DNA of 53,168 nucleotides from Perkinsus chesapeaki ATCC PRA-425 (Eukaryota > Protista > Perkinsozoa): the NCBI GenBank assembly GCA_013115145.1, contig JAAPAO010000204.1:1-53168 (forward strand), given 5' to 3'. The first letter of the stretch is position 1. Each line of letters opens with the position of its first letter. Shown piece after piece: positions 12,201-44,872 of the stretch. The notes beneath the pieces are model-generated. The model worked only from the letters and a program-made list of their open reading frames with translations, was not told where the DNA came from and ran no database searches. The position numbers and the translations under genes were made by a program.

Positions 12201-15200
12201 CAACACTAGCGCCAGGGAAAACATGGAAAAATCTCAAAAATCTGTTTTTGAGGATTTTTCGGGGAAAAAAGCGATTTTACGAGTACTCTCTATTTCTCTC
12301 AGATTTCAATCGATGCTCGAACCGATGTCGGCAGTCCAGCAGGGATCGATTTCGATGCACCAGCCCTATCCTATTAAAATGGTAGCAGACAATTTTGTGG
12401 CGCAGTGACGATGAGAGTCGGTTTTTTCAGGTGTTCAGTGGTGGTGTGTTGGACGAGCATTGGGATAGGAAGCAAGTTCAAGAGCATCTCGATATGATCA
12501 ACTCTGAGAAGTACGAGGGACCAGGGCCACAACCCCCGGCAAATGTCAGGAGGGACTCCCTTCATGGGAAGAGAAACCTTGGCAAGGTGCCACTGACCTT
12601 TAGGGCTGGAGGTCTAATAGAAAGGAGTTTGATAGGAAATATGCTACTAGTGATACGGAGGAGATATAATAGAAAGGAGTTTGATAGGAAATATGTTACT
12701 AGTGATACGGAGGAGATATAATAGAAAGGAGTTTGATAGGAAATATGTTACTAGTGATACGGAGGAGATATAATAGAAAGGAGTTTGATAGGAAGTATTT
12801 TTCCTGAAGAATAATAAAATTGATCCAGTTTGGAATCTTTTGCACGAATGCACATGTGTTCTCTCTCAGCATGTTTTTGCGAATAGTCGGCAAGGAATTC
12901 GAAGGCTTTTGTGATCAACACGAAAAATGGTAAGTTATCATTCATGGAGTTCGTGACCTTTTCGCCAAGGTATGGTACCACTTACGGTTTGGCATCCAAT
13001 GACGTTAAAAGGAGTATCTTTGAGAATTGGAAGGCGACTGAGGGAGGTGAGGCCGGCGTATCTTTCAAGCTTCAAATCGAGCAATGCTTCCGTTATGGCT
13101 TTCTGTATTGTACTTAATTATCAATTTAATTTCCTAATACTTCTTATTTTCTTAATTATTATAATTATATATTTCCGCGAACCGGTTCCTAGAGTGAGTC
13201 CACCAAATCCCGGCAAAGTTCGGCAATATTCTCAGAATCTATAACGTCAGTCAAATAGTGGGAGGCTTTAGCTTCTCCGCTATTTCCGGAGAAGGCCTGT
13301 TGTGACTGTGGAATTTCTGCTCTGCAGAGCTAGTGCAAACTCGGTAAATAGCTTCTTGAGCTGCTCGATCGAGGAGGGTCAACTGCAGCAGTTCATTGTC
13401 ACCGATTCAGATATCTCCAAGGCAGTAGAGAAGGCAACTCAGGACGGCATGGCGCTGCCTAGAAGGAATCCTTTCATCGCTGAACGCCTAGATGTGAAGC
13501 TTAAAGGTGAGAGTGACTCAATTTTGAAAGATTTCGTGCATTCTGATTCGCTGTATATGGTTTGAGCTCGGTGCCGAAAGATACTTTTGAGCTCAACCGA
13601 TGCCAGTGTCGGAATGCTAGCGGGTTGTTACGTCTAGTGTATCGGCGATCTTTAAGCGATCCACAGCCTTGGCAATTTGTGCGCTCCCCGGCTCAATGGA
13701 GTCAGCACTGAGTGAAGGGTAAATTGCAAGCCTTGGTTTATATTGTGATGAAGTGAGTACTTGTGAGACTTCATCACAGGGCTCATTTTCGCTAATTTAA
13801 ATCGTGCTGCTGTCGATTCTCTATGATTGCTAGTATGCCTCTAGACTCAATTGACGGTTGCCTGAAATGACTTCCGAGTAATATCACCGTAAATTATTTC
13901 GGATACTCTTTCGCGGGAATTCCTCTTGTTTTCCCCTTCTGTTTAGAGGAGTACCCGAAGGATTACTGGCCGGCACCGAAGGTTCTCAGCGACTGCGGAT
14001 CGAACGTGCGCGTTTTCTTCAAGCAAGATGGCCGCTTCCACATCCCCAAGACTAATGTCATGCTGGTAAGCTGTTACCGTGCGCATGCGTGAAAATTGTC
14101 GTCGTGGCCTGGCAGAATCTTTTCGCACCCTATGCATTGGATTCCCAGCGACGAGCGTTACAGGTGGCCGCCGCGGCAATGTGCCGAAGTGAGGAGCTCA
14201 ATGAGATGGCCTATGATGCGGAATGTGCTGGTTTAGTGTAAGTTCTCGCGCGCCCGGAAATAAAGGTATGACACTTCCGTGGAGATTGTTTTAAAGGCTG
14301 TGATTCGCTGGATCTGATGTATGGCTCACCTGTTGGACGAGCTCGAGCGTTTGCGAGGTGAGGGATTTTCACGGAGTGATGACTGGCGGAAGGCTAGAGG
14401 AGAATTAATAGAGGCTACTTGTAATTTCGGTTACTGTCGGAAGGTGCCCTCTGCATGCGTATACGATTGAAGCGGCGGCGGGCATGGTTAACTAGCGCGA
14501 GAACAACGCACGTTATTGATTGTAGGTATCGATTGGTGGGCGACTCAGAAGGCCTGAGGATATCCGTATCGGGTTACGATGACAAGTTGGAACTGTTGCT
14601 CAATAAAGTTTGCCATAAACTAAGAGATGACAAACCTATTGATGAAGCTGCATTTGAGAGGGTAGGCTTGTTATAGTGGTCGCTGTCACGAATTCGGGAG
14701 ATCATTTGCGGACTGTTAACAAATCTCAATCTAAAAATTTGTGTCGCTTTTGGATAATGAGTGAAAAAATTAAATTAGCTATTGGAAATATTCGATGCCA
14801 AATTTCACGAATAATCCTTCTCGACTTTCCGACACTTTAAGAATTGGGAATGTTGTTGAATGAAGACACATTTGGTAGCACTCCAGGATATAGCGAATTG
14901 ATCAGAATATCATTATTTATCCGTGAGCAATGCTTATTTATTACAGTATTATATGCAAATATTACGGTAAACGGATTGATGTATTTGAGCTTCATTACCA
15001 TTAATTAGCGATAGACTCCTCCTCACCACTTAAGTCCATCAGATGATTTCCCAACATTTTTAGTGCAAATTTTTTACATTGTTGGCTGTCTTGATCACTT
15101 GACAGATTTTTGAGAATCAGCCGGAGTTTTCCGTCACTTGTTGTTCCCATTGCTTCACTGTCATTAGACGTCACAAATAGGATTCACAAATATCTCTTCC

Positions 15201-41900: not shown

Positions 41901-44872
41901 AACCAGATCGCTGACCAGAGTAAGCAACCGTACTCTGATACGTATGACAGTGAATAAGAGAAACATGATGCTGATGATGATGCAGTATTTGGAGAACACC
42001 TAGCATAGTATGAATCATACGGTGTGATGTAATACATCAGACCGTATACATCAGATTTCATACAAGAAATTTCATACATGACCTGCCACTGCCAACCTGC
42101 CGAATTGCCGCCTTGGGTGCCCCTATGCTCGGCACCTGGGTTCCTGGAGAGCTCGCTCAAGTAAACGGATTTCTTCAAGACCCCAAGGTGCGCCCCCGCG
42201 GTAATACAGAACGGACCCTACCTGCACGCCATAGAGATGAAGTGAAGGAGTTAGTGATGAAGATGATGGGTAAAGATGAAGTGTACGAGTTAGTGATGAA
42301 GATGATGGGTAAGGTCAGGACGGACGGCGCGAAATTCACGCCGTGAACCGTTTACTGTAAGCTTACTATGATTTATAAAGCCTTAGCGATGCGCTTACTG
42401 TGAACGCTCTGCTAAGCCCTTGCTCGGACTTGATTTAGAAGCACAGATAGGGCCGCATCTGTACTACAAGACATGTATGTGAGTGAACCTTCCATATTGG
42501 GAACCACGGAAATGTCCGCGGACATGTTCCCGCTAGAAGGTTAACTTTCGCCGCTCTTATACACAGCGTTGCATGTACACCCAAGTTGCGTTCAAGGAGT
42601 ACTTGACCCCATCCATGGCGTGAGTCACTCCGTGTAACATCCAAATGCCTCTCTGATACTATGTTGTGGCAATTAGGTGCTAGTCGGTACCAAAAAAGCC
42701 TCTCAGCGTTCCAACATTCCTTAATGCTGACCCAGTTAGTAGCGTGTGATGTCAGATTATGTGATTACCCGGATACTAGTCCATGATGATGGATGACTTC
42801 CGGCCGAATCGCGACGCTGATGTGTATGCCTCATTTAATATACACATGCCCTTTCATAGACATTCGCTTTGAAAAAATAATAATTTCCGGTTTATTTTCA
42901 CAAATATGAACGAGAGATTCGAAATAACTCTCCCATACTTCGATACCATTTTCCCCCATTTTGCTAGTCCGCCATCAGTTGCCTTCTCTATCTCGATTTC
43001 CACCACTTCACCTATCAGCGAGCAAATAATAACGATAAAAACACTCTGATACCGCGGAAAAAATCATCCTCGCCCGACTCAAATACGTCAGTCTCCAAAA
43101 ATTACCTTCAATAATTTCCGCTTCCTCTCTTATCCTCACACCAATAGACTTCCTGAACGCCTGAGAAAATCGACATTTTCCAGATAACCAACAATAATGC
43201 TCGTGTCAGCTCTTCGTGCTTTCAGTGACAGCACTCCGGACTTCTCGCTTTAATTCTGCTATGCTAACTTTCTAGACGTGAACTTGTTAAGAATTAACAG
43301 TAATCCCCTACGAGTTATATCACTTTCTATGCGCTTCCTCTAGACAGTTATAAACTATTTTCCGAAATGTATATATATGCCTTATATACACAAACAACAC
43401 ATTAACAATAGTGATAACATTATTATTCACATTTTACATTAAGTCGTATTAAGTTGTCCTAATAGAACACTAATCCGACCTTTACGATTGGTATCATTCT
43501 TTTAAGACTCGAAATTCAGGAATCCCATATTTCTGATGATGGTGAATTCTCCTATCCAAGCAATTGAGCTCCCTATCACCTGTGTCAATGCTTCTGTCTT
43601 ACTCATCTCCAATGAGAATATCTCACTACCAGCCAACATAGTAAATGGTGTATCCTCCCCTAGTGCCTTGGCTAATGCCATAGCAAGGGCGGTTTTGCCG
43701 GTGCCTAAAACACAGATTACTTAATTCTAAACAGTTACCGTGGAAGGCTGAATCATCCTCAGCACCTTCCAAATATAAACGTTTCAATTTCCATTTCCGG
43801 CCCTGAAATCCCGCGTCACGTGACGTGAACGGTTGATTTCCACCCAATCTCAGTGGAATTATATTCATCACGAACCATTTATTGTCATATTTTCTGCCTC
43901 AATTTTCACTATAAGAAACGCATAGCTTTCAAGTAGCTTTCATAAGTAACATCAGGCACTCCCAGAACATTTCAATGTTTCCTATTGATCCACACTTTTT
44001 AGCGAAACTCTCATTATATCTTCACACTAGCAACACATGCCTGCGGGGTTAGTTAACTTCCTCACCTGGTTGTCCAGCAATGAGCACGGCTCGTCCAGCA
44101 ATTTTTCCTTCTTGTATCATTTTGAGAATAATACCAGCCGCCTTGCGAGCTCCACGCTGGCCGACCATACCTGAAAAGTTACTTGGATCGATGAGGTCGA
44201 TATGTACATCGCCGAGTTACTTAGATTAAATGAAACTACAAGAATATATATGGAAATGTATATCGATGAAATATAAAAAGAACAATATGTAGGGTTGACT
44301 CAGGCTAAGAAACTTTTACGCCGAAAACTCCTATCAAACTCCTTTCTATTATATCTCCTCCGTATCACTAGTAGCATATTTCCTATCAAACTCCTTTCTA
44401 TTATATCTCCTCCGTATCACTAGTAACATATTTCCTATCAATCTCCTTTCTATTATATCTCCTCCGTATCACTAGTAACATATTTCCTATCAATCTCCTT
44501 TCTATTATATCTCCTCCGTATCACTAGTAACATATTTCCTATCAATCTCCTTTCTATTATATCTCCTCCGNNNNNNNNNNNNNNNNNNNNNNNNNNNNNN
44601 NNNNNNNNNNNNNNNNNNNNNNNNNNNNNNNNNNNNNNNNNNNNNNNNNNNNNNNNNNNNNNNNNNNCCGTATCACTAGTAACATATTTCATATCAAACT
44701 CCTTTCTATTATATCTCCTCCGTATTAGCTTAAGCCCGTTCTCACCTTGAGATATCTTCCTCGCATCTAGGGCATCGTCCAAGCCCAAGCCTCTAATGTG
44801 GCTATGGGCACCGATACGCTCTATTTTGTGAACGTCACGGACTTCAGTAGCAACCTTAGGGGCGCCAGACAT
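38928..44872 (-). CDS. RUVBL2: RuvB-like 2 (reptin) AAA+ ATPase, multi-exon
   Basis: [15 protein letters not shown], Walker [65 protein letters not shown], Walker B VLFIDE, TSLRY, FMFNE. ATG at 44872, TAG at 38928. Exon 1 44746-44872, exon 2 44066-44170, exon 3 43580-43704. Confidence 0.97.
42239..42313. repeat. 39-bp near-perfect tandem duplication in a RUVBL2 intron
   Basis: GATGAAGTG(AAG/TAC)GAGTTAGTGATGAAGATGATGGGTAA occurs twice. Confidence 0.85.
44329..44723 (-). repeat. 52-bp minisatellite in RUVBL2 intron 1, same unit as 12615-12794
   Basis: Reverse complement of the IDE-intron unit. About 4.6 units before the gap and about 1 after. Confidence 0.97.
44571..44667. other. Assembly gap (97 N) inside the 52-bp array
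   Basis: Run of N. Confidence 1.

Follow-up and report, generated by a model that had tools for sequence, protein, structure and literature searches.

Two 52-bp minisatellites within genes of Perkinsus chesapeaki: probable members of a young, dispersed family of short satellite-like arrays

Introduction

The contig region analysed here, positions 1 to 53,168 of contig JAAPAO010000204.1 from Perkinsus chesapeaki ATCC PRA-425 (assembly GCA_013115145.1; hereafter 'the window'), carries the same 52-bp minisatellite inside two unrelated and oppositely oriented genes, an IDE-like peptidase gene and RUVBL2. This raises the question of how one tandem repeat came to lie in both. A preliminary description of the window had proposed reiterative copying of a small template into its targets, in which the 3' end would be fixed and each array would follow the sense direction of its host. 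Among the papers searched, no publication on Perkinsus minisatellites was found. Across the genome, the unit was found at many unlinked sites, in both orientations, with low divergence and with variable ends. Both window arrays belong to this dispersed family, probably a young one made up of short satellite-like arrays, which would have spread by DNA capture at breaks followed by local change in copy number.

The two arrays of the window

The first array occupies 12608–12798 on the forward strand (3.7 copies and 97 % matches by Tandem Repeats Finder, TRF; BLAST gave identical borders), and its purine-rich strand reads in sense with the M16/IDE-like host gene. The second, in intron 1 of RUVBL2 on the reverse strand, is interrupted by an assembly gap. 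In host sense its 3' part lies at 44329–44570 (TRF, 4.7 × 52 bp, 98 %), with the GGAGATTG variant in three units, and its 5' part, of 1.1 units, lies at 44668–44725, starting 20 nt past the 5' splice site. The gap of 97 N (44571–44667) is bordered by unit sequence on both sides; the left edge finishes in ...CTCCTCCG, the right edge opens with CCGTATCAC, and the unit sequences overlap by CCG. Because a gap in register would measure 52k − 3 nt, the 97 N are a mere estimate. The gap touches no exon or reading frame, and the array has at least 5.7 units.

The two arrays match each other, as reverse complements on the forward strand, with an E value of 3e-83, and both carry the ATATGCTAC/ATATGTTAC variant. 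The shared unit and C/T variant reported previously were thus confirmed by TRF, by the sequence and by this match. The array sequence is non-coding, as 52 cannot be divided by three and stops occur in every frame. The two arrays are not each other's closest relatives, ranking 508th of 1225 pairs.

The preliminary description had also given them matching end points, from CTAATA to GATAGGA(A) followed by GT and a T-rich run. The stop at GATAGGA(A), with GT and a T run after it, is present in both; the GT after GGAA in the IDE-like gene, to judge from the alignment of GGAAGTAT against GGAAATAT, probably still continues the unit. The common start proved not to be homologous, as TAATAG at the IDE-like locus is phase 1–6 of the unit and (cta)ATACGG at RUVBL2 is phase 39–44. 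Since these are two different unit phases, the literal CTAATA in both arrays is a coincidence. With a degenerate GGAGG counted, both arrays start about 3–7 nt from the GGAGG block, which is the commonest start among arrays of the family.

Host exons were searched singly rather than as a joined, spliced model. Upstream of the first array, exons within 10082–10981 matched Peptidase_M16_C (10082–10279, E 0.02; 10793–10981, E 1e-4), and downstream, exons within 13272–14673 matched Peptidase_M16_M (13272–13562, E 0.003; 14425–14673, E 8e-8). As all are on the forward strand, this array lies inside an IDE-like gene in the sense direction. Reading frame, GT..AG borders and the human IDE sequence around ...PEN followed by VRVAIVSKSFEG predict an intron at 12511–12869 (forward strand; 359 nt, about 168 nt without the array); Pfam and PDB searches with the two small exons beside the array gave no match, and the exact borders stay predictions.

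RUVBL2 exon 1 runs from its ATG over 44746–44872 on the reverse strand (open reading frame, ORF, 44453–44881), and intron 1 over 44171–44745 on the same strand (575 nt in the assembly, or about 178 nt with the array removed), with a GTGAGA donor and a TTTTCAG acceptor. Exon 1, ending ...ARKISQG, joins exon 2, and the exon after exon 2 matches the TIP49 P-loop domain in Pfam. Exons 1 and 2 read across the intron on the reverse strand, which bears out the earlier assignment of intron 1 as host. Between donor and array lie 20 nt, and 158 nt of T-rich intron separate the array from the acceptor. With IDE-like exons on the forward strand and RUVBL2 exons on the reverse strand, both arrays are indeed in sense to oppositely oriented hosts. 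Because the host exons continue correctly across both arrays, neither array is a mis-join. No allelic contig was found for either window locus.

A genome-wide family of 52/55-bp arrays

The genome was available as a short-read assembly of 41.7 Mb (3544 contigs). With up to three mismatches allowed, a 30-mer of the unit gave 261 matches, compared with none for the reversed control, and a query with the whole array gave 184 candidate places. Among the matches listed there were about 90 array sites on about 85 contigs, so that the repeat has spread to many unrelated places, as had been supposed. Most of these sites lie 35–75 nt from a contig end, which implies that the assembly breaks in the 52/55-bp repeat; an N gap also lies inside an array on another contig. 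Seventy of the roughly 90 sites were taken into the study of junctions and flanks.

The unit measures 55 bp in most copies (63 units, with a GGAGGAGGAG block) and 52 bp in a minority (22 units); the 52-bp unit is a deletion variant of the 55-bp unit. Pure 52-bp arrays were found at four sites, both window arrays among them. Substitution divergence was 3.2 % for units of one array and 4.2 % for units of different arrays, and many unlinked sites had units that matched the consensus exactly; the family is therefore young or still being homogenized. At some sites every unit carries private variants, which points to local amplification there. Three other minisatellites of the window, with units of 26, 28 and 65 bp, were each found only at their own locus in a genome search, and dispersal is therefore specific to the 52/55-bp unit.

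Three sites have the variants ATAGAGAGG and GATACAGAGG in common: L021 at the start of contig C3481, L022 at the end of contig C3370, and L030 at C3370:29630–29777. L021 and L022 probably represent opposite ends of a single array; the distance from L022 to L030 is 56 kb.

No ORF was found in the array family. The unit gave only a chance match to SNORA62 in Rfam (17.6 bits against a threshold of 80), and it folded no better than shuffled sequences on either strand (z +0.6 and +1.2). A known RNA family was accordingly rejected, there being no Rfam match above noise and no stable fold. A metagenome scan with a 27-mer of the unit gave no matches.

Array ends and flanking sequences

From the 70 oriented sites, 42 5' and 47 3' junctions were obtained, with borders defined by BLAST against a synthetic array. 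The 47 3' junctions were distributed over 31 phases of the 55-nt unit (p 0.14 by chi-square and 0.74 by the Rayleigh test), and the 42 5' junctions were spread across the whole unit (chi-square p 0.06, Rayleigh p 0.59). Uniformity of the 3' ends was not rejected, and the fixed 3' end suggested by the window pair does not hold for the family. Nor was there any association between start and end phase beyond the marginals (permutation p 0.58).

The junctions are sharp: in-phase identity in the flanks equalled that of the out-of-phase control, and permissive extension rarely added anything. Target-site duplications were found at none of 18 complete arrays, and the two flanks of each shared no direct or inverted repeat beyond controls. 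Flanks of different sites were unrelated even at word size 7, with 44 near-flank matches against 45 in far-flank controls, and no conserved termini were present among the 42 5' and 47 3' junctions. Poly(A), A-rich or common tails were not seen at the 3' ends. In these respects the preliminary account, which had described arrays lacking terminal repeats, an ORF and related flanks, was upheld genome-wide. Partial end units that sum to one unit, the signature of circle reinsertion, were seen in three of 18 arrays, with 2.3 expected.

Three further possibilities were considered and rejected: an inverted duplication of the target, as the two flanks of an array share no inverted repeat; degenerate units lying inverted in the sequence 3' of the array; and a cryptic host element shared by the sites, as the flank comparison at word size 7 equalled controls.

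The flanks do share a composition. At about 70 sites (L001–L075), read in the purine-rich orientation of the unit, the 10–110 nt 5' of the array are G- and purine-rich (56 % purine, p 1e-5) and the 10–110 nt 3' are G-poor and C,T-rich (43.7 % purine, p 5e-9), the bias fading to background by about 150 nt on both sides. The set included the window flanks, at 12498–12598 and 12808–12908 for the first array and 44219–44319 and 44735–44835 for the second. Neither duplicated flanks nor a shared host element explain this switch. When sites were split by host strand, the host-upstream flank was strongly G-rich and the downstream flank was not, whatever the direction of the array. This pattern fits arrays within short introns or just beyond gene ends; most copies would lie in introns or in intron-like or gene-adjacent non-coding sequence.

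Intron-rich genes of the window (12000–18000 and 33000–46000) have a strong positive GC skew on the sense strand, with values of +0.1 to +0.19 over the IDE-like gene; over minus-strand genes the skew of the forward strand is −0.13 to −0.23, with 1-kb bins down to −0.38. A single-exon subtilase gene at 3287–4735 shows no GC skew.

Orientation relative to genes

Neighbouring genes verified by Pfam were in sense to the array in four cases (IDE, RUVBL2, a WD40 gene and a weak DAO match) and antisense in four (ACOX, a PKD channel, a GYF gene and a DEAD-box helicase). The Pfam run on 60 long flanking ORFs yielded only six usable gene calls. The sign of the far-flank GC skew, which agreed with the gene strand at seven of the eight verified loci, was used as a proxy for host strand and gave sense:antisense ratios of 13:11 and 14:13; a second proxy count gave 22 sense, 25 antisense and 24 ambiguous sites. 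The long ORFs showed no consistent skew, and a codon-usage model for calling gene strand was dropped, being too weak in this genome. A rule of sense orientation, which the two window arrays had suggested, is thus at odds with the family as a whole. Random orientation together with random end phase was the outcome that the preliminary description had named as speaking against its own model, and it is what was obtained; the fixed 3' end and the sense bias of the window pair are coincidences of two copies.

At all six one-sided sites with a Pfam-verified neighbour (L014, L024, L038, L051, L060 and L075), the gene is directed towards the array; this is a small set, which ORF selection may have biased.

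Origin of the arrays

We consider it probable that the family spread as naked DNA. Pieces of array, cut at arbitrary phases, would be captured during the repair of double-strand breaks; they might come as extrachromosomal fragments or circles, or template switching might copy the array instead. Units would afterwards be gained and lost locally, with the copying of whole arrays as a possible contributing mode. The dispersal of the sites, their variable ends, both orientations and low divergence, and the lack of target-site duplications, conserved termini or flank homology in the junction set are consistent with such a route through repair or extrachromosomal DNA.

Several points weigh against this explanation. 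The insertion step itself is deduced from one short-read assembly, in which no long source array is present (at most about six units per site, all longer arrays being interrupted by assembly breaks), and some complete arrays at other loci could be joins made by the assembler across the repeat. Start and end phases are mildly clustered at a fine scale (p ~0.02). Finally, the shared 5' end and rare variants of one pair of twin arrays, described below, are not predicted by random fragment capture alone.

That pair offers the best case for a second explanation, in which whole arrays are copied from locus to locus with their ends included, by template-switch repair or through a defined extrachromosomal molecule, later trimming having diversified the ends. 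The array at 12608–12798 in the IDE-like gene has a twin at an unlinked locus, L004:1494–1685 (contig C1665, about 9158–9349). The two have in common their start phase, an odd first partial unit (GGAGGT + TAATAG) and a C variant in unit 1; both consist of 3.6 copies of a 52-bp unit, and they end within 2 nt of each other; their flanks show no relation at the DNA or protein level. Two or more shared rare states were found in only two of 820 junction pairs. Set against this, there is one clear twin pair only, the remaining 5' and 3' ends are diverse and start phase is not associated with end phase, which makes whole-array copying an unlikely account of the family as a whole. A more far-reaching form, an autonomous mobile tandem repeat whose whole arrays move independently of a transposase, prefer intron-like sites passing from G-rich to pyrimidine-rich sequence and are still active in Perkinsus, seems to us doubtful.

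Reiterative copying of a small template into its targets, by rolling circle or reverse transcription, is very improbable as first proposed. It predicts a fixed 3' end, variable copy number and host sense, and it drew on the window arrays, which end 1–5 nt apart at GATAGGA(A) and are both in sense. Some support comes from the family too, in that 14 of 47 3' ends lie in phases 21–30 (8.5 expected), and the fine-scale clustering of ends (p 0.02) can also be read in its favour. Opposed to it are the 31 phases of the 3' ends, with uniformity not rejected, the independence of start and end phases (permutation p 0.58), orientation ratios of 4:4 and about 1:1, and 3' ends at which no poly(A), tail or target-site duplication was seen. 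The model in its fixed-end form is largely refuted; rolling-circle or reiterative copying as such may have played a part.

It is very improbable that the arrays are internal or tail repeats of a non-autonomous transposon, such as a miniature inverted-repeat transposable element (MITE), a Helitron or Helentron, or a short interspersed nuclear element (SINE), of which the remainder is short or decayed. Tandem repeats borne by Helentrons and by other mobile elements are known in oysters and beetles; beside the present arrays, conserved sequence was not detected at any sensitivity tried, nor a fixed phase, target-site duplication or inverted repeat, and the long flanking ORFs scanned contained no transposon domain. 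An assembly artefact, with mis-joined contigs or library contamination behind the window arrays or the dispersal, can hardly be entertained: most contigs do break at arrays, two of which contain N gaps, but host exons continue correctly across both window arrays, variants are locus-specific, flanks are unique on both sides and units differ by up to 10 % between loci.

Comparison with known repeats

The family consists of head-to-tail tandem repeats of one unit (TRF), this unit is found at many unlinked loci in gene-rich DNA, and the arrays have neither a conserved flanking element nor a preferred monomer phase at their edges; these are features of dispersed short arrays of euchromatic satellite DNA (satDNA). 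On anatomical grounds, an introner, a retrocopy whose 3' end is fixed and a transposon with defined ends are all excluded. MITEs and other DNA transposons were rejected because terminal inverted repeats and target-site duplications were not found, Helitron or Helentron cargo because flank sequence is not shared and junction phases vary, and retrocopies mediated by SINEs or long interspersed nuclear elements because the 3' ends fall in many phases and neither A-rich or common tails nor target-site duplications were found.

Introner elements, as in Micromonas, Aureococcus and fungi, constitute a whole intron, bring their own splice sites and occur in many unrelated genes. The present arrays are like them in being repeated sequence in introns of unrelated genes, and unlike them in filling part of a pre-existing intron, with splice sites 20–158 nt outside. 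An introner was rejected because the RUVBL2 array lies within part of intron 1 only; the intron of the IDE-like gene is presumably similar.

The family is closer to the dispersed satDNA known from insects than to a novel mobile element whose ends are fixed. In Tribolium castaneum, Cast1–Cast9 form short euchromatic satDNA arrays for which spread by insertion of extrachromosomal circular DNA (eccDNA) was proposed (PMC11610590, PMC4675708). Like them, the Perkinsus arrays are head-to-tail, numerous and set in gene-rich DNA, with dissimilar surrounding regions (as in most Cast families) and array ends without a regular pattern. They differ in unit length (52–55 bp against about 170–360 bp), in their host, an alveolate parasite, and in that the poly(A)/(T) junction motif of some Cast families was not seen at the junctions; array lengths can be compared only to the extent that assembly breaks inside arrays allow. 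For the euchromatic Rsp-like and 1.688 satellites of the Drosophila X chromosome, insertion mediated by repair or eccDNA was proposed (PMC7403614). For the arrays of both insects, repair by microhomology or template switching has been put forward besides the insertion of extrachromosomal array DNA. Like the Perkinsus family, the Drosophila satellites form small clusters that have recently reached new loci, with little divergence between loci and with truncated end monomers. Rsp-like repeats enter 1.688 clusters at shared microhomology junctions, whereas the targets here are unrelated unique sequences, and the circle signature, end monomers that make up one unit, is not enriched. Satellite-like repeats borne by Helentrons or MITEs, for instance in Crassostrea gigas, are arrays inside elements with recognizable conserved flanks (PMC7492417). 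The short tandem arrays dispersed through the genome are a point of likeness, and the conserved flanks, which were not found in Perkinsus, a point of difference.

The spread of satDNA in gene-rich DNA, studied mainly in insects, molluscs and primates, is hereby extended to an alveolate parasite, and might be easier to dissect in the small genome of Perkinsus. The 52/55-bp family is a likely cause of many contig breaks and so bears on the completion of Perkinsus genomes. The arrays probably vary in copy number and in being present or absent, which makes them candidates for strain markers.

Other features of the window

The three single-locus minisatellites lie at 35114–35298 (seven copies of 26 bp), 32295–32405 (four copies of 28 bp, 100 % identity) and 5237–5374 (two copies of 65 bp, with a third copy 100 nt upstream at 5077–5136). 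A 387-aa ORF of the window had no match in a search for homologous proteins. At 1602–1941 a periodic repeat of 30/60/90 bp (11 × 30 bp) lies within long open frames of both strands and may be coding; the 313-aa frame at this position gave no match in Pfam.

Elsewhere in the assembly, the 21-mer of the Perkinsus-type spliced leader occurred, with up to one mismatch, at 30 places, compared with none for the control (for example C8:829–849 and C8:7019–7039), and several contigs carried two copies of it about 6 kb apart.

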